64,000 nucleotides of DNA, taken from contig CM075977.1 in NCBI GenBank assembly GCA_038087875.1, positions 321,098,001-321,162,000 on the forward strand, read 5' to 3'. Below are positions 4,059 through 58,653 of the stretch, piece after piece (positions within the stretch are counted from its first letter, which is position 1; each line of letters opens with the position of its first letter). Position numbers and translations under genes: made by a program. The notes under the pieces were generated by a model. It ran no database searches, had not been told where the DNA came from, and saw only the letters and a list, made by a program, of their open reading frames with translations. The DNA is from Malacoraja senta (lineage: Eukaryota).

Positions 4059-5252
4059 GAATAAGCGAGTTTGGTATTCCGAAAAACGCAAGGAATCATG
4101 GGATTTGTTAAAGGCCGAACGTTATAAATAAAAAATAGCTGTAGATTCAGTGAGTATAGTTTTGGGTCCGTTTTTTTTTTGGTCCTGTTTCAGTGGGAGA
4201 ACGGGGGGGGGGGGGGGGGGGAGAGACTGGACAGGCACTCATCCGCAGAACAGCACCTCATCCGCAGCCAGGGATGAACCAGTGTCCCCGGCGCAGCAAG
4301 TGCTGCCGAACCCCCACCCCGACTCGAGTGTCTCATCCCCGCCCGTGGGGCGGCCGGAGACTTCCGGACCGACGGGACACTGGCCCCAGGCACACCGCCA
4401 GCACGGAGAACCCACAGCCAAGCGCCAACTCCAGAGGAACCCCCTCTCCGATGGGCCGCTACAGCGACAAGTGCCAGTTCGCCTACGGCCTGGCCGAGCT
4501 GCACTCCCTCAGCCTCAACCCCAAGTACAAGCCGTACCTGCCACACCACCGGCTTCTGCCCCTACGGTACCCGCTGCCACTTCATCCACAACCCCAAGGA
4601 GGAGCGAGGGCCTCGCCTGCGCCAGAGCGCCAGCCTGGGCTCAGCCTCCTCCGGCCCGCCGCTAGACTGGGCCGCGCTTGCGGGCGGCCTTCAGCCCTGA
4701 CCTGGAGTTGGAGCTGGCCTGTACTCTGGGCTTGGGGCTGGGCAAGGAAGGGGGATGGGCCCGACCTGCCCATGGCCAGCTGGAGCCAGTCCGCAGACTC
4801 TGTCTCCGACCAGGACGACTCCAGCAGCAACGGCTCCGAGTCGCCCGTCTTCGAGCAGGGCCAGCGGCTGCCCATCTTCAGCAAGATCTCGGTGTCGGAC
4901 TGAGGGGAGGAGAGGGAGGGAGGGGGGTGGAGGTGGAGAGCTGCCGGCCAACCCGGCTGGACCGGCAGAGCTGAGCTGGAGCCAGCGACTGCAAGTCCGG
5001 GGCCGCTCCACCAGCCCAGGCCCACCCTGGACACCTCCGGTTCACAGTGGCGGGCACCGGGGAGGGGATGGGGACGGGGACAGCCCAGCAGCAACTCAAG
5101 AGCACCCGCAGCGATGGAGAGCCGGGCCCGACCCCGACCACGGATGAAACGGAAGCCTGCACACAATGCAGCACCACCGTTGCTGAGACTGTTTTATCGC
5201 TAGTGACCTATGACCGGGGCATGCACAGTCAGCATACCGAGCTCGCTTATTC
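4059..5252. mobile_element. Putative non-autonomous TIR DNA transposon carrying a captured gene fragment (Pack-type element)
   Basis: GAATAAGCGAGTTTGGTAT (4059-4077) is a 17/19 inverted match to ATACCGAGCTCGCTTATTC (5234-5252). Flanks AGTA / ATTA may be a 4-bp TSD with one mismatch. The interior is GC/CpG-rich within an AT-rich intron. Confidence 0.6.
4451..4903 (+). pseudogene. ZFP36: Truncated, frameshifted ZFP36/tristetraprolin-family fragment
   Basis: RYSDKCQFAYGLAELHSLSLNPKYK is the second half of CCCH finger 1 plus linker. After a frameshift near 4532: RTCHTTGFCPYGTRCHFIHN (finger 2) and PRLRQSAS. C-terminus GSESPVFE...RLPIFSKISVSD* is the TTP-family CNOT1-binding tail. Family certain, paralog less so. 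Confidence 0.9.
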
Positions 5253-5374
5253 ATTATTATAACAATGCAAAAGGCTCATTCATCTAAACAGTTTGATCTA
5301 ATCTGGCACATCAATATAGTAAAATTGTATTTTAAAGATTATTGACTACCTACAAATAGATACATTTAAGTAAT

Positions 5375-5640
5375 AACCTTTTTCACATGCATATCTCAAG
5401 TGTTTTATAGTTAATAAAGTACTTTTGAAGTGACTTTCTGTGTAATGCAGGAATAATTTAAGTCAATTTCCACACAGCAAGAGCCCACAAACAATGACCT
5501 AATAATCTGTCAGGTGATGTTACGAAGGATAATTTCCAGTCAGAACACCAAGGGGAATATCCTGCTTTTCTCAAAGTTGTACCATTTCATCTTTTTTGTT
5601 AACTTGAGGTCTAGTTGGGACCCTGGTTTAACATGTTTTA
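5375..5640 (-). mobile_element. Deu-domain SINE remnant (SacSINE/AmnSINE-like)
   Basis: Reverse complement contains ttaaaccagggtccc, acagattattaggtcattgtttgtgggctcttgctgtgtggaaattg and cttcaaaagtacttt, matching the recalled Deu domain and tail. Confidence 0.7.
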
Positions 5641-5804
5641 AACTAATAGCTTTAAACTCTTACTAAATTTAAATGTTTTGTGAAACCATTTTTTATATTC
5701 ACTCAATTTTAAATCTAGAAATCTATTTGTTCTTGGAGGATTTTTCAACGGAATTCAATTGTAAAGTGAAGAGGATCGCTAATCTTGGAATTGACCAGGA
5801 ATTA

Positions 5805-8040
5805 GAAACATAGAAAATAGGTGCAGGAGGAGGCCATTCGTCTCTTCGAGCCAGCACTGCCATTCATTGTGATCATGGCTGATCGTCCCCAATCAATAAC
5901 CCGTGCCTGCCTTCTCCCCATATCTTTTGATTCCATTAGCCCCAAGAGCTCTATCTAACTCTCTCTTAAATCCATTCAGTGATTTGGCCTCCACTGCTCT
6001 CTGTGGCAGGGAATTCCACAAATTCACAAATCTCTGGGTGAAAAAGTTTTTTCTCACTTCAGTCTTAAATGGCCTTCCCTTTATTCTATAACTGTGGCCC
6101 CTGGTTCTGGACTCACCCAACATTGAGAACATTTTTCCTGCATCTAGCTTGTCCAGTATTTTTATTATTTTATATGTTTCTATAAGATCACCCCTTCATC
6201 CTTCTAAACTCCAGTGAATACAAACCTAGTCTTTTCAATCTTTCCTCATATGACAGTCCCGCCATCCCAGGGATGAATCTCGTGAACCTACGCTGCACTG
6301 CCTCAATCACAAGGGTGTCCTTTCCACAAATTGAGAGACCAAAACTGTACACAATTCTCCAGATGTGGTCTTACCAGAGCCCTATACAACTGCAGAAGAA
6401 CCTCTTTATTCCTATACTGAAGTCCTCTTGTTATGAAGGCCAACATTCCATTAGATTTCTTCACTGCTAGCTGTGCCTGCACGCCAACTTTCAGTGACTG
6501 GTGTACAAGGACACCCAGATCTCGCTGCACCTCCCCCTGACCTAACCTAACCCCATTGAGATAATAATCTGCCCCTTGTTTTTGCCGCCAAAGTGGATAA
6601 CCTCACATTTATCTATAATATACTGCATCTGCCACGCATCTGCTCACACACTCAACCTGTCCAGGTCACCCTGCAACCTCCTAACATCCTCTTCGCAGTT
6701 CACACTGCCACCCAGCTTTGTGTCATCCGCAATCTGGCTAGTGTTGCTCCTAATTCCCTCTTCCAAATCATTAATATATTTGGGAAGCAGTTGCGGCCCC
6801 AACACCGAGCCTTGCGGCACTCTACTCGCCACTGCCTGCCATTCTGAAAAGGACCCGTTCACTCCTACTCTTTGCTTCCTGTCTGCCAACCAATTTTCTA
6901 TCCATGTCAACACCGTACCCCCAATACCACGTGCTCTCATTTTAGTCACCTGTCTCCTGTGCATGACCTTATCAAAGGCTTTCTGAAAGTCTAGATACAC
7001 CACATCCACTGGCTCCCCTTCATCCATTTTACTTGTCACATCCTCAAAAAATTCCAGAAGATTAGTCAAGCATGATTTCCCTTTCATAAATCCATGTTGA
7101 CTTGGACTAATCCTTTTACTGCTATCCAAATGCCCCATTATTACCTCTTTAATAATTGACTCCAGCATCTTTCCCACCACCGGTCAGGCTAACTGGTCTG
7201 TAATTCCCCATTTTCTCTCTAGCTCCTTTCTTGAAAAGTGGGATAACATTAGCATAACATCAATTCACAGGAACTGATCCTGAATCTATTGAACATTGGA
7301 AAATGATCACCAATGCGTCCACTATTTGTAGAGCCACCTCCCTGAGGACCCTGGGATGCAGACCATCCGGCCCAGGGGATTTATCATCCTTCAGTCCCAT
7401 TAGCCTACCCGATACTATTTCTCGCCTAATGAAAATTTCTTTCAGTTCCCCTACCCCCTTAGATCCTCTGTCCTCCAGTACATCTGGGAGATTGTTTGTG
7501 TCTTCCTTAGTGAAGACAGATCCGAAGTACCTGTTCAACTCTTCTGCCATTTCCTTGTTACCCATAATAATTTCACCCGTGTCTGCCTTCAAGGGACCCA
7601 AATTTGACTTTGCTACTCTCTTTCCCTTAACATATTTAAAGAAGCTTTACTGTCCTTTATATTCCTGGCCAGCTTCCCCTCGTACTTCATCTTTTCAGCC
7701 CGTATTGACCGTTTTGTTTCCTTCTGTTCTATGAAAGTTTCCCAATCCTCTGGCTTCCGGCTACTCTTTGCTGTGTTATACATCTTTTCTTTTAGTTTTA
7801 TTCTATCCCTAACTTCTCTTGTCAGCCGCGGTTGCCTCCTACTCCCCTTATAATCTTTCTTCCTTTTTGGAATGAAATGATCCTGCGTCTTCCGGATTAT
7901 GCCCAGAAATTCCTGCCATTGCTGTTCCACCGTCATTCCTGCTAGGATCCCTTTCCAGTCTACCTTGGCCAGCTCCTCTCTCATGCCTTCATTATCCCCT
8001 TTGTTCAACTGCATCACTGCCACTTCCGATTTAACCTTCT
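5805..8040 (-). mobile_element. 5'-truncated CR1 LINE (linker, RT and 3' UTR) in a UBE2K intron
   Basis: ORFs 7613-8023, 7260-7601, 6644-7180 ([28 protein letters not shown]), 6303-6530 and 5893-6132; 3' tail ttttctatgtttcta. Confidence 0.95.
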
Positions 8041-8401
8041 CAAATTGAGGATTAATATGAGTCTGGTGTTAATTCTTCAATTTGTGGAAAATTCTGTGAT
8101 TGTATATTCGATAATAACTCTTAAGAATCATTCTGATGGAGTGCTTTCCTTTCATGTCCACTTTGTCTTTAAACATTTTTTTTCCCGCCTGAGTGGATAA
8201 ATGCCCAGGCATTCCTGAGTTATTTGATCTTCAATGTTATGTGATGCTTTTTTATTGAACAAAAGGCTGCTAATTGTCATTTGTGAACCAGGTTTACATT
8301 TTAATCCATTAGGTCATTAACTCCTCATCATAGCAATTTTAATGTGTTTCCTTACTGTCCCCATTTGAGCAGTAGATTTATGGATTATGTTCTTTCTGCA
8401 G

Positions 8402-8530
8402 TACAAGCAAAATCCAGAGATGTTCAAACAGACAGCCAGACTCTGGGCACACGTGTACGCTGGAGCACCGGTACCTAGCCCTGAGTATACTAGAAAAGTA
8501 GACAAATTGTGTGCTATGGGCTTTGATAAA
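8402..8530 (+). CDS. UBE2K: UBE2K coding exon: YKQNPEMFKQTARLWAHVYAGAPVPSPEYTRKVDKLCAMGFDK
   Basis: Acceptor ttctttctgcag ends at 8401, donor gtgagt starts at 8531; 129 nt, phase 0/0. Includes the UBA MGF motif. Confidence 0.97.
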
Positions 8531-10781
8531 GTGAGTAATAAAAGTGATTTTAACAACATACAATAATAGATCATTTTAAAATAATTTCACACTTGTAATT
8601 TAATTTAAACAATTTTATTTAGATTCTGCATTTGTGGTGTGCCTGCATTTTACGTGTGTTCTCATTGGGATGACTTGCCACAAAGTGTTTGACAAAATGA
8701 ACTGTTGGGAAAGGGATGGATTGAAAACTGAACTTAAAATATATAATTGTAGCTACATAATATATTTCTTAGAATCTCGATTGATACCAAAGGAAGGTTG
8801 TGGTTCTGCTGAATACTACTTCTGTTGAAAGAGAAGTATTCTGTGACCAATTTCTGGAAACAAACAGTTCCATATATTTTCCTATTGGAGGGAGGGAAGT
8901 TCAGATTTCAAGTTTAAGTTGTATGTATATAAACCCCATTGTTTTAGTACTTCTCTACTCTTTGTTAATTTGTTGACTTGTATGCCAAACTGACATTTCT
9001 GTAGTACTGAATTATGAATGCATAATTCTATTTTCCTCCCATTTTCTAGTTCATTGATACTGTGTCTATTGCTACCAATCCAAATGCCTTCACTGCAACT
9101 CCAATGGCTGCTCTTTCTAAACCCATACATTTCCAGGATCCCCTAGATTTATCCTTGTTCAATTCCCCCAAATGTACATGTTCCCTTTTAGTGACATGGT
9201 AGGAAATTATGCCAGCTTTCAGTGTTATTTTTCTGTTTTTGTTATTTTTTTCTAGCTCTTTACCACTTTTCTCAAGTTTTAATTGTATCTTTGGATTAAG
9301 ATTGCTTGTGCAGTGAAAAATCTGTATTAAATTACAACTTCATTGGAAAGTTCCCATTTCCCACCTCAGTTTCTGAGATAATTAGTGCAAACCCATGGAA
9401 AGATTCTGTGGTGTTCTGAACTAAAATTATGTTATTAATTCAAATGTGTACAAGTATTTGGCAATAACAGGGATGTGAAACCCTCTGCAAATGTTATAAA
9501 TGAGAATGTTTGACATGATTTGGATAGTGAATGTGGTAGTGAAAGCACGTAAATCTGAAGTATAAACAGTCTGAGGCAAACAATTAGGATTTTTTAATCA
9601 ACCCAGTTGTTGAATGATTCTAGATTTGTGCCCGAGTTGTCTGGATGTTGTCATGAGAATTATTCGGTGATTTAGTTTGTAAGAACACTAATTGCTACTA
9701 ATCAATCATGTAAAATTCTTGCTAGTGAATGAATTTGCACTTGTTTTCTCAGGCGCACGTTTGAGATCTGCTGGAGGCATTTCAAATCTGAAAAACAGTT
9801 CCGTCATTTAAGTGTTCAAATAACTTTTATAAGGCAATTTTGGTAGCAGAAGTTCAGCATGCCAAGTTAACTATAATTTTTGATACACTTTTTGGTGTGA
9901 ATTTCTTGCAATAAGTGAGGTTGCCAGCTCCCTCTGTCAGAGTGAAATAAATTTGATAACATTTTCTGAACTACTCCAATGCAGAATTGAATAAGGAAAT
10001 CCAGAGGTTGCTGTCAGTGTCCTGCCCCAATAGGTGTGGAATTGTAGCCGTTTCCATTGTAATTGATGAATGGAATTTCATTATTCAGAAGGATTATTTC
10101 CATATTTTATACACAGAACCCTGAAAATGTACCTCATTGAATGAGGTGTAACGATTAAATGATGCACTAATTCATCATTAGCGATCTGTTTTATTGGCTC
10201 TTCAACAAATTTTTTTGTGTGGACTGTTGTTCACATTTTATTTTTAAATGATAAATTCTTTCAAATTTTATTCATCTTTACCTTGTGTTTTTGATACAGA
10301 TTTCAGTTAGGAAATGGTTTAAAACGGTGCTTGAATTAGTGCTTTTTTTTCTAGTTTGGGAATTTTTTAACGTTCTTCAGCCTGATGTCAGCATTGTTAC
10401 TGAATGATAGATGCCCAAGAACTAATGCCAAGCAGCCAGTGATGTTGGGACAAGTGAGATCCTAATCATAGAAACATTCCACAGTACCTTCTAAGCTTTT
10501 GGTGTGCATTGTGACTTCGATATCTATGCCATTTTACCAAGGGTTTGAGGTGATATACTTTATGCTGTGGTAGTGGCATTAGGCATAAGTGCAGCTATCA
10601 TGAATATTGAATGCATCGAAGGGTAGCCAAGGATTGCAACTTGAGTTCTATCAAATGTTTGACGAGATGGTTATCTGACATGCACTGTGAATGTTACTTC
10701 TCACCCAGTTTAATATTGAATGTCAATGAGGTTATGTTGTACATAGGAATCAATAGATTGTTTGACTGTTTGAATGTTGTG

Positions 10782-11472
10782 TCAGTCAATGAAAGTAAGC
10801 ATGCATGTACAGCAGGCAGTGAAGAAAGCGAATGGCATGTTGGCCTTCATAACAAGAGGAGTTGAGTATAGGAGCAAAGAGGTCCTTCTGCAGTTGTACA
10901 GGGCCCTAGTGAGACCACACCTGGAGTATTGTGTGCAGTTTTGATCTCCAAATTTGAGGAAGAACATTCTTGCTATTGAGGGAGTGCAGCGTAGGTTTAC
11001 AAGGATAATTCCTGGGAAGGCGGGACTGTCATAGGCTGAGAGAAGGGAACGGCTGGGCTAGTATACTCTGGAATTTAGAAGGATGAGGGGATCTTATTGA
11101 AACATATAAGATTATTAAGGGTTTGGACACGCTCGAGGCAGGAAACATGTTCCCGATGTTGGGGGAGTCCAGAACCAGGGGCCACAGTTTAAGGATAAGG
11201 GGTAAGCCATTTAGAATGGAGACGAGGAAACACTTTCTCACACAGAGAATTGTGAATCTGTGGAATTCTCTGCCTCAGGGGGCGGTGGAGGCCGGTTCTC
11301 TGGATACTTTCAAGAGAGAACTAGATAGGGCTCTTAAAGATAGCGGAGTCAGGGGATATGGGGAGAAGGCAGGAACGGGGTACTGATTGTGGATGATCAG
11401 TCATGATCACATTGAATGGCGGTTCTGGCTAGAAGGGCCGAATGGCCTACTCCTGCACCTATTGTCTATTGA
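10782..11472 (+). mobile_element. 5'-truncated CR1 LINE (ORF2 C-terminus and 3' UTR)
   Basis: LYRALVRPHLEYCVQF motif; ORF 11123-11386; tail cctattgtctattg. Confidence 0.95.
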
Positions 11473-14834: not shown

Positions 14835-16193
14835 GTGGTGGGGAAGATGCTGGGGTCAATCATAAAAGATGAAATAGCGGCATATTTGGATAGCAGTAAC
14901 AGGGTCGGTCCAAGTCAGCATGAATTTACGAAGGGGAAATCATGCTTGACTAATCTTCTGGAATTTTTTCAAGATGTAACTAGGAAAATGGACAAGGGAG
15001 AGCCAGTGGATGTAATGTACCTGGACTTTCAGAAAGCATTTGATAAGGTCCCACATAGGAGATTAGTGGGCAAAATTATGGCACATGGTATTGGGGGTAG
15101 AGTGCTGACATGGATAGAAAATTGGTTGGCAGACAAGAAACAAAGAGTAGGGATTAACGGGTCCCTTTCAGAATGGCAGGCAGTGACTAGTGGGGTACCC
15201 CAAGGCTCGGTGCTGGGACCACAGCTATTTACAATATACATCAATGATTTAGATGAAGGGATTCAAAGTAACATTAGCAAATGTGCAGATGACACAAAGC
15301 TGGGTGGCAGTGTGAACTGTGAGGAGGATGCTATGAGAATGCAAGGTGACTTGGACAGTGGGCAGATGCATGGCAGATGAAGTTTAATGTGGATAAATGT
15401 GAGGTTATCCAATTTGGTAGCAAAAACAGGAAGGCAGATTATTATCTAAATGGTGTCAAGTTGGGAAAAGGGGAAGTACAAAGGGATCTGGGGGTCCTTG
15501 TTCATCAGACAATGAAAGTAAGCATGCAGGTACAGCAGGCAGTGAAGAAAGCGAATGGCCTGTTGGCCTTCATAACAAGAGGAATTGAGTATAGGAGCAA
15601 AGAGGTCCTTCTGCAGTTGTACAGGGGCATAGTGAGACCACACCTGGAGTATTGTGTGCAGTTTTGGACACCTAATTTGAGGAAGGACATTCTTGCTATT
15701 GAGGGAGTGCAGCATAGGTTTACAAGGTTAATTCCCGGGATGGTGGGACTGTCATATGATGAGAGAATTGAGCGGCTGGGGCTTGTGTACTCTGGAATTT
15801 AGAAGGATGAGAGGGCATCTTATTGAAACATATAAGATTATTAAGGGTTTGGACACGCTAGAGGCAGGAAACATGTTCCCGATGTTGGGGGAGTCCAGAG
15901 CCAGGGGCCACAGTTTAGGAATAAGGGGTAAGCCATTCAGATGGGAGATGAGAAAAAACTTTTTCCCACAGAGTTGAGAGTCTGGAATTCTCTGCCTCGG
16001 AGGGTGGTGGAGGCGAGTTCTCTGGATACTTTCAAGAGAGAGCTAGATAGGGCTCTTAAAGATAGCGGAGTCAGTGGATATAGGGAGAAGGCAGGAACGG
16101 GGTACTGATTGGGGATGATCAACCATGATCACATTGAATGGCGGTGTTGGCTCGAAGGGCCGAATGGCCTACTCCTGCACCTATTGTCTATTG
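14835..16193 (+). mobile_element. 5'-truncated CR1 LINE (RT to 3' UTR)
   Basis: ORFs 14835-15380, 15377-15802 and 15756-15977 with RT motifs; tail cctattgtctattg. Confidence 0.95.
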
Positions 16194-20204: not shown

Positions 20205-21772
20205 AGGTAATGTGGTTAGGTAAACTGTTGAGACTAAATCCCCAGGGCCTGATGGTCTGCATCCCAGAGTACTCAAGGAGGTGGCCCTAGAAATCGTGGA
20301 AGCATTGTTGATCATTTTCCAATGTTCCCTCGACTCTGGATCAGTTCCTGTGGACTGGAGGATAGCCAATGTAACTTTTTAAGAAAGGAGGGAGAGAGAA
20401 AATGGGGAATTATAGACCAGTTAGTCTTACAACAGTAATGGGGAAGATGCTTGAGTCGATTGTTAAAGATGTTATAGCAGCACATTTGGAAAGCAGTGAC
20501 AGGATCGGTCAAAGTCAGCATGGATTTATGAAGGGGAAATCATGCTTGATTAATCTTCTGGAATTTTTTGAGGATGTAACTAGAATGGATATGGGAGAGC
20601 CAGTGGATGTGGTGTATCTGGACTTTCAAAAGGCCTTTGACAAGGTCCCATACAAGAGATTGGTGTGCAAAATGGTATTGGGGGTAATGTATTGACATGG
20701 ATGGAGAACTGGTTGGCACACAGGTAGCAAAGAATATGAATTAACGGGTCCTTTTCAGAATGGCAGGCAGTGATTTGTGGGGTGCTGCAAGGCTCGGTGC
20801 TGGGACCCCAGTTATTTACAATATATATTAACGATTTAGACAAGGGAATTAAATGTGACATCTCCAAGTTTACAGATGACACAAACCTGGGTGACCTGCG
20901 AGGAGGATGCTATGAGGCTGCAGGGTGACTTGGATTGGTTGGGTGTGTGGGCAGAAGCATAGCAGATGCAGTATAATGTGGATAAATGTGAGGTTATCCA
21001 CGTTGGTGGCCAGAACAGGAAGCCAGATTATTATCAGAATGGTGTCAGATTAGGAAAAGGGGAGGTGTAACGAGACCTGGGTGTCCTTGTAGAGCGGTCA
21101 CTGAAAGTAAGCATGCAGGTACAGCAGGCAGTGAAGAAAGCTAATGACATGTTGACCTTCATTGCGAGAGGATTTGAGTTTAGGAGTAAGGAGGTCCTAC
21201 TGAAGTTGTACAGAGCCCTGGTGAGACCGCACCTGGAGTATTGTGTGCAATTTTGGTCTCCTAATTTGAGGAAGGACATTATTGCTATTGAGCGTAGGTT
21301 CACCAGGTTAATTCCCGGGATGGCAGGACTGACATATGATGGGTCAGCTGGGCATGTATTCATTGGAATTTAGAAGGATGAGAGGGAATCTTACAGAAAC
21401 ATATAAAATTCTTAAAGGATTGGACAGGCTAGATGCAGGAACAATGTTCCACATGTTGGGGGACTCCAGAACCAGGGGTCACAGTTTAAGAATAAGGGGT
21501 GGCCATTTATGACTGAGATGAGGAAACAATTTTTCACCCAGAGAGTTGTGAATCAGTGGAATTTTCTGCCACAGTGGAGGCCAATTCACCGGATGTTTTC
21601 ATAGAGAGAGCTAGATTTAGCTCTTAGGGCTAAAGGAATCGAGGGATATAGGGGGGAAACGCAGGAACGGGGTATTGATTTTAGATGATCAGCCATGATC
21701 ATATTGAATGGCAGTGCTGGCTCGAAGGATGGAATGGCCTACTCCTGCACCTATTTTTCTTTGTTTCTATGT
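20205..21772 (+). mobile_element. 5'-truncated CR1 LINE
   Basis: KSPGPDGLHPRVLKE; ORFs 20402-20695 and 21113-21373; 3' UTR ending ctatttttctttgtttctatg. Confidence 0.93.
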
Positions 21773-21859
21773 GAACAGAGCTTATTTAGTCTACTTTTAA
21801 TTGAGATGCATCATCCAAAGCAGCATCCTGATCCATCTCTGCGGCATCCTTTTCAGTGC

Positions 21860-29312: not shown

Positions 29313-29512
29313 NNNNNNNNNNNNNNNNNNNNNNNNNNNNNNNNNNNNNNNNNNNNNNNNNNNNNNNNNNNNNNNNNNNNNNNNNNNNNNNNNNNNNNNN
29401 NNNNNNNNNNNNNNNNNNNNNNNNNNNNNNNNNNNNNNNNNNNNNNNNNNNNNNNNNNNNNNNNNNNNNNNNNNNNNNNNNNNNNNNNNNNNNNNNNNNN
29501 NNNNNNNNNNNN
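29313..29512. other. Assembly gap (200 N)
   Basis: Run of N. Confidence 1.
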
Positions 29513-31777: not shown

Positions 31778-33332
31778 AGACAATAGGTGCAGGAGTAGGC
31801 CATTCGGCCCTATGAGCCAGCACCGCCATTCAATGTGATCATGGTTGATCATCCACAATCAGTACCCCGTTCCTGCCTTCTCCCCTGAGTCTGCTATTAT
31901 TAAGAGCCCTATCAAGCTCTCTCTTGAAAGTATCCAGAGAACCGACCTCCACCGCCCTCTGAGGCAGAGAATTCCACAGACTCACCACTCTCTGTGTGAA
32001 AAAGTGTTTCCTCATCTCCGTTCTAAATGCCTTACCCCTTATTCTTAAACTGTGGCCCCTGGTTTTGGACTCCCCCAACATCAGGAACATGTTTCCTGCC
32101 TCTAGCGTGTCAAAACCCTTAATAATCTTATATGTTTCAATAAGATTCCCTCTCATCCTTCTAAATTCCAAAGTATACAAGCCCAGCCGCTCCAATATCT
32201 CAGCATATGACAGTCCCGCCATCCCGGGAATTAACCTTGTGAACCTACGCTGCACTCCCTCAATAGCAAGAATGTCCTTCCTCAAATTAGGGGACCAAAA
32301 CTGCACACAATACTCCAGGTGTGGTCTCACTAGGGCCTGAAACAATTGCAGAAGGACCTCTTTGCTCCTATACTCAACTCTTCTTGTTATGAAGGCCAAC
32401 ATGCCATTCGTTTTCCTCACTGCCTGCTTTCTTTGACTGATGAACAAGGACCCCCAGATCCCGTTGTACTTCCCCTTTTCCCAACTTGACACCATTTAGA
32501 TAATAATCTGCCTTCCTGTTTTTGCTACCAACGTGGATAACCTCACATTTATCCACATTAAACTGCATCTGCCATGCATCTGCCCACTCACCCAACCTGT
32601 CCAAGTCACCCTGCATTCTCATAGCAGCCTCCTCACAGTTCACACTGCCACCCAGCTTTGTGTCATCTGCAAATTTGCCAATGTTACTTTGAATCCCTTC
32701 ATCTAAATCATGGATGTATATTGTAAATAGCTGCGGTCCCAGCACCGAGCCTTATGGTACCCCACTAGTCACTGCCTGCCATTCTGAAAGGGTCCCGTTA
32801 ATCCCTACTTTGTATCCTGTCTGCTAACCAATTTTCTATCCATGTCAGCACTCTACCCCCAATACCATGTGCCTTAGTTTTTCCCACTAATCTCCTACGT
32901 GAGACCTTATCAAATGCTTTCTGAAAGTCCAGGTACACGACATCCACTGGCTCTCCTTTGTCCATTTTCCTAGTTACATGTTCAAAAAATTCCAGAAGAT
33001 TAGTCAAGCATGATTTTCCCCTTCATAAATCCATGCTGACTCGGACTGATCCTGTTACTACTATCCAAATGTGCCGCTATTTCATCTTTTATGATTGACT
33101 CCAGCATCTTCCCCACCACCGATGTCAGGCTAACTGTTCTATAATTCCCTGTTTTCTCTCTCGCACCTTTCGTAAAAAGTGCGATAACATTAGCTACCCT
33201 CCAATGCACAGGAACTCATCCTGAATCTATAGAACATTGGAAAATGAACACCAATGCGTCCACGATTTCTAGAGCCACTTCCTTAAGTACCCTGGGATGC
33301 AGACCATCAGGCCCCGGGGATTTATCAGCCTT
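31778..33332 (-). mobile_element. 5'-truncated CR1 LINE
   Basis: ORFs 33000-33209, 32798-33007, 32374-32745 and 31839-32495. Confidence 0.95.
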
Positions 33333-37360: not shown

Positions 37361-40300
37361 GAATAACCATATAACCATTACAGCACGGAAACAGGCCATC
37401 TCGGCCCTTCAAGTCCGTGCCGAACACTTTTTTTCCCCCCCTTCTTTCTTCTTACTTCCCCCTAGTCCCATCTACCTGCACTCAGACCATAACCCTCCAT
37501 TCCTTTCCCGTCCATATACCCATCCAATCTATTTTTAAAGGATAAAATCGAACCCGTCTCCACCACTGGAAGCTCATTCCACACAGCTACCACTCTCTGA
37601 GTAAAGAAGTTCCCCCTAATGTTACCCCTAAACTTCTGTCCCTTAATTCTCAAGTCATGTCCCCTTGTTTGAATCTTCCCTACTCTCAATGGGAAAAGCT
37701 TATCCACGTCAACTCTGTCTAACCCGCTCATCATTTTAAAGACCTCTATCAAGTCCCCCCTTAACCTTCTGCGCTCCAAAGAATAAAGACCTAACTTGTT
37801 CAACCTTTTTCTGTAACTTAGTTGCTGAAACCCAGGCAACATTCTAGTAAATCTCCTCTGTACTCTCTCTATTTTGTTGACATCCTTCCTATAATTAGGT
37901 GACCAAAATTGTACTCCATACTCCTGAATTGGCCTCACCAATGCCTTGTACAATTTTAACATTACATCCCAACTTCTATATTCAATGCTCTGATTTATAA
38001 AGGCCAGCACACCAAAAGCTTTCTTTACCACCCTATCTACATGAGATTCCACCTTCAGGGAACTATGCACAGTTATTCCTAGATCCCTCTGTTCAACTGC
38101 ATTCCTCAATTCGCTACCATTTACCATGTACGTCCTATTTTGATTTGTCCTGCCGAGATGTAGCACCTCACATTTATCAGCATTAAACTCCATCTGCCAT
38201 CTTTCAGCCCACTCTTCCAAATGGCCTAAATCTCTTTGTAGACTTTGAAAATCTACTTCATTATCCACACCACCACCTATCTTAGTATCATCTGCATACT
38301 TACTAATCCAATTTTCCACACCATCATCCAGATCATTGATGTACATGACAAACAGTGGACCCAACACAGACCCCTGAGGCACCCCACTAGTCACCGGCCT
38401 CCAACCTGACAAACAGCCATCCACCATTACTCTCTGGCATCTCCCATTCAGCCACTGTTGAATCCATCTTGCTACTCCACCATTAATACCCAACAATTTA
38501 ATCTTCTTAACCAACCTTCCATGAGGAACCTTGTCAAAGGCCTTACTGAAGTCCATATAGACAACATCCACTGCTTTACCCTCATCAATTTCCCTAGTAA
38601 CCTCTTCGAAAAATTCAAGAAGATTAGTCAAACATGACCTTCCAGGTACAAATCCATGTTGCCTGTTCCTAATCAGACCCTGTTTATCCAGATGATTATA
38701 TATAGTCTTTAAGTATCCTTTCCATTAATTTGCCCACCACTGACGTCAAACTAACAGGTTTGTAAATTGCTAGGTTTACTCCTAGAACCCTTTTTAAACA
38801 ACGGAACAACATGCGCAGTACGCCAATCCTCCGGCACTATTCCCGTTTCTAATGACATTTGAAATATTTCTGTCCTAGCCCCTGCTATTTCTACACTAAC
38901 TTCCCTCAATGTCCTAGGGAATATCCTGTCAGGACCTGGAGACTTATCCGTTTTCATATTTTTCAAAAGTGTCCGCACCTCCTCTTCTTTGCTACTCTGC
39001 TTGTTTCCCTTACCTCACATAATTCCATATCCTTCTCCTTGGTGAATACCGAAGAAAAGAAATTGTTCAATATCTCCCCCAGCTCTTTTGGCTCTGCAGA
39101 TAGCTGTCCACTCTGACTCTCTAATGGACAATTGTATTCCTTGTTATCCTTTTGCTATTAATATAGCTGTAGAAACCGTTTGGATTTACTTTCACCTTAC
39201 TTGCCAAAGCAACCTCATATCTTTTAGCTTTTCTAATTTCTTTCTTAATATTCTTTTTACATTCTTTATACTCCTCAAGCACCTCATTTACTCCATGCTG
39301 CCTATAATTATTGTAGATCTCTCTCTTTTTCCGAACCAAGTGTCCAATTTCCCTTGAAAATCATGGCTCTTTCCAATTTTCACTATTTCCTTTCAACCGA
39401 ACAGGGACATAAAGATTCTGTACTCTTAACATTTCACCTTTAAATGTCCTCCATTTCTCTTCTACATCCTTCCCATAAAACAACATGTCCCAATTCACTC
39501 CTTTTAAATCCTTTTGCATCTCCTCAAAGTTAGCCTTTCTCCAATCAAAAATCTCAACCCTACGTCCAGTTCTGACCCTCTCCATAATTATATTGAAACT
39601 AATGGTATTGTGATCACTGGACCCGAAGTGCTCCCCAACGCATACCTCCGCCACCTGCCCCGTCTCATTTCCTAACAGGAGGTCCAGCACTGCCCCTTCT
39701 CTAGTAGGTACCTCTATGTATTGCTGCAAAAAACTATCCTGCACACATTTTACAAACTCCAAACCACCCAGCCCTTTTACAGAATGTGTTTCCCAGTCTA
39801 TGTGTGGAAAATTGAAATCTCCCACAATCATTACCTTGTGCTTACTACTAATATCTGCTATCTCCTTACATATTTGCTCTTCCAATTCTCGCTCCCCATT
39901 TGGCGGTCTATAATACACCCCTATAAGTGTTGCTACACCTTTCCCATTTCTCAGTTCCACCCAAATAGGCTCCCTAGATGAGCCCTCTAATCTATCCTGC
40001 CAAAGCACTGCTGTAATATCTTCCTTGATAAGCAATGCAACACCCCCACCTCTTGCCCCTCCAATTCTATCACCCCTGAAGCAACGAAATCCTGGAATAT
40101 TTAGTTTCCAATCACAGCCCTCCTGCAACCATGTTTCACTGATCGCCACAACATCATACTTCCAGGTGTCAATCCAGGCTCTAAGCTCATCCACCTTTCT
40201 TACAATGCTCCTAGCATTAAAATAGACAGTTAAGAAACCCACCACCACTTATTCTGTTTATTATCTTTTTCTTCTTTCTCCCCTACATTTTGGGTCCGAG

Positions 40301-51215: not shown

Positions 51216-52315
51216 CTACACAAAAAAGGAAAATATTTTAAAAAGTAAAATAAATGTGCCTTACTAAATAGATACTTCCTCAAATTGCTTTATCAATCTG
51301 TGAGTCCTATTAGATTAAAGACAAATACATCAAGATACAGGAGGGTTTGTAGAAGTTATAAATACTTGCAGGAATAACATACATTTGTATTTGATAATGG
51401 AAAAAAAAGGAATCATATAGGGAAAATGTATGGTTAATTTACAAGAATCACTAAATGTTTTGAGCTGGAAGAATCGATTTATGGTAGTCCTTTGGTATTG
51501 TCAGTGACAGAGGAGGAGAGTGGAAGCTTTGGAGAATAGGGCCAAGGCTTTGATGTTTGCTAAAATAGAGGAACATTGATAGCACTCGAGACACAGGAAG
51601 AAGTCTAAAGGGGATCACAGAAAATAAAGATAAATTTGTTTGAGAACCTATATCTGATAATGAAAAGCCATCACATTTTAATGGACTCTAAAATAAGCGG
51701 TTTTAATAGTTTCAAATTTGTAGAGTGTGAGGGAATAGCATATACAATATTGGAACAGGTAAATCAAGAGATGCTGGCAGAGATAAGATGGAGTGGAAAT
51801 ACATTTGGATATGGAAGGGATAAATGCAAATTATCAAGGTATAATGATCAATGAGGAAAAAGTAATCCAATTTTCAGACTTAAACTGCAGATGTCTTTGA
51901 AATGTAACAGTATTTTTAAGAACATTTTGAACAGTGTGCATGCTGAAGGATGTTCAGAATGGGACATATCAAATGTCGATAGCACAAGCAGCTAATATCA
52001 TAATAATTGCCAGTTTTCATTAGATTAATGTTCCTTTGCTATAAATTTGTATAATAAGAAATAATATAAACCAAAGTGAAATTAACATTTTGTTTTCTCA
52101 GTATTTTTAACTTAAGCTGTTTTGAAGACAAAATAAACAGAATAGGACAGGATAAAAGAGAAGTCTGATCTGTTCAAGTTTTTGTTTTACATAATTGAAT
52201 GATGACAACTACATTCTCTTTGAGAAAATATGATCAAGAATGCGGTTCCCCAAAGTAAGTATATGAAAGCCAGACAGTAACTGGAAAATATTTTCTTTTC
52301 AAGACACAAGGGGAG

Positions 52316-52600
52316 GGATGGTGGCACAGAGGTGCAGTTGCTGCCTTACAGCGCCAGAAACCCGTGTTCGTTCCTGACCATGGCTGCATGTCTGTACAGA
52401 GTTTGTACGTTCTCCGCGAGACCCGAGTGTGTTTTCTCCGGGATCTCCAGTTTCTTCCGACACTTCAAAGACACAGGTTTGTAGGTTAATTGGCTTGGTA
52501 TAATTGTAAATTGTCCTTAGTGTGTGTACGATAGTGTATATGTGTGGAGATCGCTGGTTGGGTGCAGACTCAGTGGGCTGCACCGCGCTGTAACTAAACA
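52316..52600 (+). mobile_element. tRNA-derived V-SINE (HE1-like)
   Basis: A-box-like gtggcacagagg, B-box-like gttcgttcc, V domain gagtttgtacgttctcc...ctccagtttcttccgacacttcaaagac. Confidence 0.8.
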
Positions 52601-56957: not shown

Positions 56958-58653
56958 CAGAGCTGCCAAGTTTTGTCAGAACATTTCAGTATTCTAGTAC
57001 CTGAAAATCAGCATTTTGCTGAGGAAATCAGTATTTTTACATGGTGCCATTTTGCAGGAAAAAAATGTTTTTTTTAATGTGCGGTCATATCCATGTAAGT
57101 GTACAAGAATGCATAACTTTGCTACCAATTGACATGTCTTCTACGCACCTTACTTGACAGTGCATTCATTGCCATCTCTTTGTATACTGCTGTTTGAACG
57201 GCTGCTGCTTTTAGCACCAGATGATGATGTAGAAGCCATTTTGGAAGCTTCCCTCTCCCTCCCTCGCTCTCTCTCCCTCCTTCCTCTCTTTCCCTCCATC
57301 TCTCCCCCTCCCTCTCTCCATCCCACCCTCCCTCCTTTTTTTTTCCCTCCCTCTCTTATTCCCTCCCTCTTCCACTCTACCTCCCCGAACAGTCTGTGAC
57401 TCATAGCGCTATGTGTAAAGCCCATTGCGCTGTGTGTAAAGTCCATAGGGCTGCAGCCGGTAGCACTATATTTAGAACTCATAGAGCTGTAGCCGACAGC
57501 ACTTCGTTTCAATTCCCACGCACTAAATTGACAGCGCTGTTTAAACCTGGAGCGGGACAGGCAGATCAAACCGTACAAAAATAATCAATAGACAATCGGT
57601 GCAGGGGTAGGCCATTCGGCCCTTCGAGCCAGCACCGCCATTCAATGTGATCATGGCTGATCATCCCCAATCAGTACCCCGTTCCTGCCTTCTCCCCATA
57701 TCCCCTGACTCCGCTATTTTTAAGAGCCCTATCTAGCTCTCTTGAAAGCATCCAGAGAACCTTCCTCCACCACCCTCTGAGGCAGAGCATTCCACAGACT
57801 CACCACTCTCTGTGAGAAAAAGTGTTTCCTCGTCTCCGTTCTAAATGGCTTACTCCTTATTCTTAAACTGTGGCCCCTGGTTCTGGACCCCCCCAACATC
57901 GTGAACATGTTTCCTGCCTCTAACGTGTCCAAACCCGTAACAATTTTATATGTTTCAATGAGATCTCCTCTCATCCTTCTAAACTCCAGAGTGTACAAGC
58001 CCAGCTGCTCCATTCTCTCAGCATATGACAGTCCCGCCATCCCGGGAATTAACCTTGTAAACCTACGCTGCATTCCCTCAATAGCAAGAATGTCCTTCCT
58101 CAAATTAGGGGACCAAAACTGCACACAATACTCCAGGTGTGATCTCACTAGGGCTCTGTACAACTGCAGAAGGACCTCTTTGCTCCTATATTCAACCCTC
58201 TTGTTATAAAGGCCAACATGCCATTCGCTTTCTTCACTGCCTGCTGTACCTGCATGCTTACTTTCATAGACTGATGTACAAGGACCCCCAGATCCCGTTG
58301 TACTTCCCCTTTTCCCAACTTGAAGCTATTTAGATAGTAATCTGCCTTCCTGTTTTTGCTACCAAAGTGGATAACCTCACATTTATCCGCATTAAACTTC
58401 ATCTGCCATGCATCTGCCCACTCCCCCAACCTGTCCAAATCATCCAGATCTTGAAATTTAAAATACTAATAGATTTAATCTGCTATAATTTTTAGAGGTA
58501 CAGTATGACTTTTTATATCCTTGCATTTTTTAAGCAGCAAGATGAAACAGGAAGTGGGGCTGATTAAAAATTTTAAAAAAATATCCGTATTTAACAAAGC
58601 AAAATCATACATCCGTATTCTTATCGCATTTCCGTACAAAATCGGATATCGAA
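56958..58653. mobile_element. Unclassified insertion, possibly a non-autonomous DNA transposon missing one end
   Basis: Interrupts the CR1 fragment; starts CAGAGCTGCCAAG; short reiterated motifs near both ends (aaatcagtattt and atccgtatt); no matching right TIR found. Confidence 0.45.
57586..58440 (-). mobile_element. 5'-truncated CR1 LINE
   Basis: ORFs 58148-58438 and 57729-58163; tail caatagacaat on the + strand. Confidence 0.93.

Follow-up and report, generated by a model that had tools for sequence, protein, structure and literature searches.

Positions 4059-5252 of a 64,000-nucleotide stretch of Malacoraja senta DNA (the window, by which we mean the whole stretch analysed; positions 321,098,001 to 321,162,000 of contig CM075977.1, assembly GCA_038087875.1) are a multicopy Pack-TIR, that is, a case of host-gene transduplication by a transposon with terminal inverted repeats (TIRs), and the gene concerned is ZFP36 (tristetraprolin). 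We consider it highly probable that the element is a decayed copy of a TIR transposon family whose ZFP36 piece was captured once and then mobilised to unlinked loci. An initial annotation of the window had suggested a Pack-type TIR transposon with a ZFP36 capture, and this suggestion is supported by the finding of copies with the same 23-bp termini, the same cargo and the same 5' breakpoint at other loci.

Across its 1.19 kb the element has a GC content of 0.64 and an observed/expected CpG ratio of 0.64; the corresponding values in its 1.2-kb flanks are 0.37-0.40 and 0.13-0.25, respectively. Exons of UBE2K were located on the + strand at approximately 1560-1665 (…AAAMTLRTVLLSLQALLAAAEPDDPQDAVVAQ), 8400-8530 (YKQNPEMFKQTARLWAHVYAG…) and 18220 (…VIVALSSQSWDVECATERLLSN), and the element is therefore intronic and in sense orientation. 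Composition and exon mapping thus confirmed the annotated GC- and CpG-rich island of about 1.2 kb in an AT-rich UBE2K intron. The island is bounded by an inverted repeat at 4059-4077 and 5234-5252 that matches at 17 of 19 positions, as had been reported (89.5% over 19 bp by BLAST), and that can be extended to 20 of 24 positions at 4059-4082 and 5229-5252. The ends read GAATAAG...CTTATTC, the flanking letters are AGTA on the left and ATTA on the right, as claimed, and the 11-mer GAATAAGCGAG occurs exactly only at the two element ends within the window. Homology to the copies at other loci starts at the left TIR (4059-4082, + strand; core AATAAGCGAGTTTGGTATTCCGA from 4060) and stops at the right TIR (5229-5252, - strand). 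No poly(A), AU-rich tail, long direct repeat or long target-site duplication (TSD) was found at the edges of the element, which confirms the earlier statement that a poly(A), an AU-rich tail of a 3' untranslated region (UTR) and a long TSD are absent.

The captured ZFP36 coding fragment lies at 4455-4903 on the + strand and ends in the stop codon TGA at 4901-4903. Its translation reads MGRYSDKCQFAYGLAELHSLSLNPKYK, continues in another frame as CHTTGFCPYGTRCHFIHNPKEERG… and then as …SESPVFEQGQRLPIFSKISVSD followed by the stop, and the three frames together spell a ZFP36-family protein. The fragment begins halfway through CCCH finger 1 and then covers finger 2, the linker and, at the C-terminus, the RLPIF motif (CNOT1-binding type) up to the stop, and the only Pfam match in it is one partial zf-CCCH. 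That a ZFP36 fragment starts in the middle of finger 1, as first annotated, was confirmed by the translation, the zf-CCCH match and the alignment to the donor gene described below. In the window copy the frame is disrupted by the loss of 11 bp after KYK (at about 4531, in finger 2), by further indels and by a deletion of about 77 bp in the His/Gln-rich stretch, and a zinc ligand of finger 1 has changed from His to Tyr. This copy does not contain an intact two-finger frame through the C-terminal motif, as finger 1 lacks its first half and there are several frameshifts.

Copies at unlinked skate loci

Three copies were compared, the one in the window and two in Leucoraja erinacea. A protein search with the 236-codon open frame of the window gave one match, XP_055493223.1 (L. 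erinacea, 243 aa, 'ZFP36-like'), which starts with the same MGRYSDKCQF and then runs through stretches that are out of frame in the window. Its locus, L001, is within a malic-enzyme intron of L. erinacea CM054012.1. In BLASTN and MAFFT alignments, window 4060-5251 and L001 9446-10770 were 71-74% identical when gaps were counted and 78-90% identical without gaps, depending on the segment; the alignment ended exactly at the inverted repeats, and the identity of the flanks was at chance level. An exhaustive protein search was dominated by true ZFP36-family proteins and revealed a single additional copy, XP_055505784.1 (P0018, L. erinacea, 147 aa, 'ZFP36L3-like'), the N-terminal half of which is the translation of the non-ZFP36 5' block of the element. 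At the P0018 locus, L002 (CM054008.1), the third copy was found at 6807-9141 with the same ends. This copy is longer, with about 141 bp extra in the left arm and about 250 bp extra after the stop codon, and it is split in its 3' UTR part by a nested miniature inverted-repeat transposable element (MITE) at 8130-8812 with a TAA duplication. The nested MITE has 17-bp TIRs (AGGGCCTGTCCCACTTG…) and is Harbinger-like, and its inner hairpin repeat recurs several times in L003, the Rhinoraja longicauda ZFP36 locus introduced below. One other protein model, P0104, also starts in mid-finger, yet it was rejected as a further copy, being an unrelated invertebrate-like partial model.

In approximately 110 kb of skate DNA, the 23-bp consensus terminus AATAAGCGAGTTTGGTATTCCGA was matched with up to 6 mismatches only by the six ends of the three copies, and the first base of the element covaries across the two ends (G…C in the window, C…G in L001). 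No further copy inside the 64-kb window was detected when the two termini, the cargo and the two flanks were searched by BLAST, and the element-specific N-terminal part of P0018, used as a protein query, returned only the protein itself. A metagenome scan with the TIR pattern yielded 17 loci, all of them chance 21-23-mers without further homology, and the joined flanks of the three copies matched no paralogous empty site in the window and the compared locus DNA. Because the copies occupy three unlinked loci with unrelated flanks and their homology is bounded by the TIRs, the element is a mobile one; segmental duplication or a chance inverted repeat does not fit three such copies. The check named in the initial annotation, a search for paired termini elsewhere with the same cargo, was therefore positive in L. 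erinacea. A tandem duplicate of about 100 bp within the spacer upstream of the cargo is found in L001 (9819-9866 and 9917-9966) and at the equivalent place in L002, and since the window copy is without it, structural subfamilies exist.

These copies bear directly on two other explanations of the insert. The abrupt change of composition might point to an assembly artefact, or to foreign GC-rich DNA spliced into the intron, to which we give next to no credence: an independent public skate assembly (L. erinacea) contains two more instances of the structure, the cargo groups with skate ZFP36 genes and the boundaries coincide with the inverted repeat, and the artefact is refuted by the L001 and L002 copies. 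It is also very improbable that the cargo is a 5'-truncated processed ZFP36 retrocopy made by the machinery of long interspersed nuclear elements, with the inverted repeat due to chance or to a pre-existing MITE that received it passively. Retrocopies are typically 5'-truncated, and since the cargo consists wholly of exon 2 and 3' UTR, its intron content is compatible with an RNA origin; however, neither a poly(A) nor a 7-20-bp TSD surrounds the cargo in any copy, and the same cargo, the same TIRs and the same non-ZFP36 neighbours at three unlinked loci require the whole TIR unit to have moved. The paralogous copies thus refute a retrocopy at this locus, although RNA-derived filler may have been used at the single capture.

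Both RefSeq proteins, XP_055493223.1 (L001:10001-10732) and XP_055505784.1 (L002:6001-7640), are probably annotation artefacts, read from transposon copies and partly in non-ZFP36 frames, and the two Leucoraja ZFP36-like genes are probably transposon-borne pseudogenes. With at least two copies in L. erinacea, such 'ZFP36-like' and 'ZFP36L3-like' entries inflate the apparent ZFP36 family of skates.

Donor gene and single capture

The closest full-length relatives of the finger region are skate ZFP36 orthologues of about 290 aa, P0153 (Rhinoraja longicauda, 289 aa) and P0152 (from a Logan transcript-like contig), followed in rank by sawfish, manta and shark ZFP36. Like P0153, the cargo has the skate-specific TLGLGLGKGGGGG stretch and the C-terminal RLPIFSRISVSD motif; it differs from skate ZFP36 in starting only halfway through finger 1, with exon 1 and the N-terminal region missing, and in being frameshifted and inside a transposon. 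Window 4455-4932 aligned to exon 2 and 3' UTR of the Rhinoraja locus (L003 6539-7082) and to the Logan contig L004 from position 437, with an ungapped identity to these donors of 0.89-0.90 and a Kimura two-parameter distance of 0.11-0.12. In all three copies, the homology to the donor begins at the same base inside finger 1 (L003 6539, L004 437), where the donor reads …SSFCRYGDKCQF (FCRYGDKCQF) and the element …SPMGRYSDKCQF. As all copies share this breakpoint base, there was one capture followed by transposition. The copies also share substitutions that are derived with respect to both skate donors, such as Thr to Ser in KYKTE and GGC to GGT. Exon 2 of L003 starts at 6224, and because the only donor intron (5045-6223) lies upstream of the breakpoint, filler in the form of DNA cannot be told apart from cDNA. 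Donor sequence continues past the stop codon, with at least 190 bp of 3' UTR retained in L002 (up to and past the nested MITE) and about 30 bp in the window (4904-4932, + strand).

We constructed a maximum-likelihood tree from 510 shared columns, rooted on Pristis and another batoid. The three copies and the two skate donors were grouped at 100/100, the terminal branches were 0.066-0.11 for the copies and 0.027-0.039 for the donors, and the internal branches were very short. The tree therefore assigns a single capture to the skate lineage, close to the base of the skates sampled, with the insertions following soon after. In this setting we weighed whether a resident TIR element could have been filled independently at each locus by gap repair that does not depend on transposition. 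Most animal Pack-TIRs are single-copy and of gap-filling origin (Tan et al. 2021, PMC8277862), and gap filling may well fit the one original capture, but the identical 5' breakpoints, the shared derived substitutions and the same backbone on different chromosomes make independent captures very unlikely, and we regard this explanation as extremely improbable.

The copies have decayed neutrally. Private changes per copy, given as synonymous to non-synonymous, were 3:17, 7:20 and 8:11, and the lesions are separate: the window has the 11-bp deletion in finger 2 and the lost zinc ligand, and downstream of the fingers the frame shifts in L001 and meets a stop codon in L002. We nevertheless weighed whether the copies represent a genuine dispersed ZFP36-like family, in which a transposon-borne truncated tristetraprolin was or is expressed and functional. 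An ATG marks the capture junction precisely, and the surrounding 35 bp do not differ between the window and L001. Copies agree at 90% of positions in the finger segment compared to about 78% elsewhere, the left arm retains a conserved TATA-like box, and Gnomon gene models exist. Moreover, the consensus of the copies differs from both donors by 5 synonymous and 4 non-synonymous changes (rough ratio 0.27), a count that is too small for interpretation and that includes changes made under selection in the donor lineage. Against this family stand the three copies, each broken differently with private changes that look neutral, and a finger 1 that is half missing, with its zinc ligand replaced in the window, and we judge it decidedly unlikely.

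A bolder proposal is that, in the active period of the family, the capture made a transposon-borne gene, more than a passive carrier, from the junction ATG, a putative TATA-like box, one and a half CCCH fingers and a CNOT1-binding tail. Its product might be a truncated tristetraprolin that interferes with decay mediated by AU-rich elements, or it might serve as a source of antisense or small RNA against ZFP36, and intact expressed copies may persist in some skate; separately, the backbone may belong to an undescribed or MULE-like superfamily of cartilaginous fishes without a recognisable TSD. We regard this proposal as unlikely.

Backbone, target sites and transposon class

The ZFP36 piece sits in the centre of a backbone for which the simplest reading is a pair of long degenerate inverted arms with a tRNA-SINE-like module (SINE, short interspersed nuclear element). 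The following features of the window copy are on the + strand unless stated otherwise. A left subterminal arm at 4083-4202 is common to all copies in the three-way alignment, and in L002 it matches the right arm in inverse orientation for about 110 bp; the TIR of that copy accordingly extends to about 110 bp and scored 71, compared to a mean of 18 and a maximum of 32 in shuffled sequences. Inverted matches to the right arms, at several collinear depths, were also obtained with a profile of the left arm (nhmmer E 3e-7), and in the window the inverted arms are reduced to 24 bp. Within the left arm lie a TATA-like TATAAATA (4123-4130), TCAGTGAGT (4147-4155) and a T-run (4171-4180). In the window TATAAATA is followed 24 bp on by TCAGTGAGT, which is both initiator-like and 5' splice-site-like (4123-4155); all three copies conserve the pair, but the spacing differs by 8-9 bp among them, and we gave the motifs no weight. 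A poly-G run of 19 G follows at 4203-4221, kept in L001 and degenerate in L002. The right subterminal arm occupies 5147-5228, and at 5214-5228, adjoining the right TIR, it holds the remnant of a 14-bp palindrome that is perfect in L002 (CTGGGCATGCCCAG).

On either side of the cargo lie the GC-rich blocks 4194-4450 and 4904-5180, which had been proposed as further captured fragments. This was not supported: the blocks are common to all copies, and therefore were already in the ancestral element, they are partly mutual inverted images, and they contain SINE-like segments, so that they appear to belong to the long arms; within the second block, the first 30 bp or so after the stop are the donor 3' UTR. 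An nhmmer profile built from four SINE heads matched the 5' block in antisense, at window 4249-4331 on the - strand (E 5e-4), in L002 (4e-5) and in L001 (2e-3), and this segment resembles the tRNA-like head of a skate tRNA-derived SINE. The same profile matched the 3' block weakly in sense, at window 5109-5146 (E 0.08) and in L001 (0.05). In L001 the SINE-like segments form an internal inverted match of 75% over 52 bp, and 5109-5146 is thus the inverted partner of 4249-4331. Conversely, two tRNA-derived SINE copies in L003 were matched by a profile of the 5' block (E 1e-7 and 5e-7) and, on the opposite strand, by one of the 3' block. ARAGORN detected no intact tRNA in the element, and no Rfam family matched it. 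The GC-rich spacer at 4332-4454, which ends in the ATG (4451) at the cargo junction, and the GC-rich block at 4933-5108, common to L001 and in part to L002, were not found at the 12-kb donor locus L003. A tRNA-derived SINE whose head has A- and B-box-like motifs is present at window 52311-52495, L003:8560-8760, L003:2204-2373 and L001:15081-15250, and it is this head that the inverted SINE-like segments in the two arms of the element resemble.

The class of the transposon was approached through its target sites and termini. We scanned the three copies for TSDs of 2-10 bp at offsets of 0-2, giving 81 configurations. The 4-bp flanks agree at 3 of 4 positions in the window (AGTA/ATTA) and at 2 of 4 (TTGA/TGTA) and 0 of 4 (CTTA/GCCT) in the other two copies, and as no length from 2 to 10 bp fits, the suggested 4-bp TSD and Sola-like affinity were not borne out. 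The class of 8-10 bp was marginally highest (0.44-0.47); the flanks match at 5/9, 4/9 and 3/9 positions for 9 bp and at 5/10, 5/10 and 4/10 for 10 bp, on a background of about 0.3, and neither result is significant after 81 configurations. The ends are not known to match a terminal motif of hAT, Tc1/mariner, piggyBac, Harbinger, CACTA, Transib or Helitron elements. The long arms, the GA start and the habit of capture are MULE-like, and we treat this as a lead only. For non-autonomous elements, the Repbase rule of assignment uses TSD length together with positions 1-11 of the termini (PMC4455052).

Several points weigh against a captured and mobilised TIR family. No TSD of 2-10 bp was recognisable in any of the three copies (identity in the best configuration, 0.47-0.50), and for this reason the signature of cut-and-paste transposition is incomplete and the superfamily is unassigned. 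The absence is unexplained, because at a divergence of approximately 7-11% per copy a short TSD should persist in most copies. In addition, the support for monophyly of the copies in the tree was moderate (78/83), and only three copies are known. Overall, we favour the captured and mobilised TIR family, the history of which would be as follows. The backbone would be a non-autonomous skate TIR element with conserved termini of 23-24 bp within inverted arms that were originally at least 110 bp long. Its centre would have acquired, once, a piece of ZFP36 exon 2 that runs from the middle of finger 1 through the stop into the 3' UTR, and the chimeric element would then have moved, presumably in trans by a transposase, to several unlinked loci. 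One copy would have inserted in the UBE2K intron, and each copy would have decayed neutrally thereafter, leaving the window copy old and dead.

Known capture systems and neighbouring repeats

The kind of event described here is rare but has already been described in animals. An earlier paper still described transduplication of protein-coding sequence as unknown in animals (PMC2572040). Tan et al. (2021, PMC8277862) since surveyed 100 animal genomes and listed 370 young Pack-TIRs, of which 81 are from vertebrates, and the statement in the initial annotation that gene capture by TIR elements is much less documented in vertebrates was therefore overstated. The elements in that catalogue are mostly hAT or Tc/mariner with no MULE among them, their median cargo is 224 bp and coding cargo is a minority; most are single-copy and were attributed to transposition-independent gap filling. 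Only 4 of 281 unique Pack-TIRs, in frog and alligator, were multicopy; for these the proposed route was fork stalling, template switching and subsequent transposition (FoSTeST; PMC8277862).

The skate family resembles the multicopy Pack-TIRs Pack-hAT-N8_XT of Xenopus tropicalis and Ssk-FB4 of Drosophila (PMC8277862) in being TIR-bounded and non-autonomous, with a host fragment inside and an identifiable parental gene. It is also like them in having copies on different chromosomes that share one capture, a sense copy in an intron, and annotation or transcription as a chimeric gene. Compared to the young Pack-TIRs of the catalogue, it is much older (the 7-11% divergence per copy being measured in the cargo) and carries a larger cargo (coding sequence of about 480 bp, together with 3' UTR), its backbone family is unclassified with no recognisable TSD, and its host is a cartilaginous fish. 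With plant Pack-MULEs it shares long inverted arms (at least 110 bp in L002) that enclose a captured GC-rich exon fragment, the multicopy state and a patchwork interior; it differs from them in lacking a clear 9-10-bp TSD, and no Pack-MULE was found in the 100 animal genomes (PMC8277862). Helitrons have captured genes in vertebrates, namely in vespertilionid bats (PMC4224331) and Xenopus (PMC12001565), and there too host exon fragments were amplified by a DNA transposon. A Helitron was rejected for the skate element, which has true TIRs and lacks 5'-TC and 3'-CTRR ends; the first base beyond its right end is A, T or G, unlike the A/T insertion site of Helitrons. The skate element is thus a clean multicopy case, from a cartilaginous fish, in which a TIR transposon has transduplicated host coding sequence. 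It also provides a dated marker, the capture falling within the skate lineage, and a handle on an unclassified family of elasmobranch DNA transposons.

Other repeats were observed around the element. A repeat of about 620 bp has six copies in the window (5805-6436, 10847-11469, 15570-16191, 21159-21779, 31778-32392 and 57588-58207), one of them about 550 bp downstream of the element, and it is 76-78% identical to L001 3582-4195 and 16105-16613. A run of 200 N at 29313-29512 marks an assembly gap or a mask. The longest and closest repeat common to both loci is window 37363-38343, which is 90% identical to L001:17987-18957 over approximately 1 kb.

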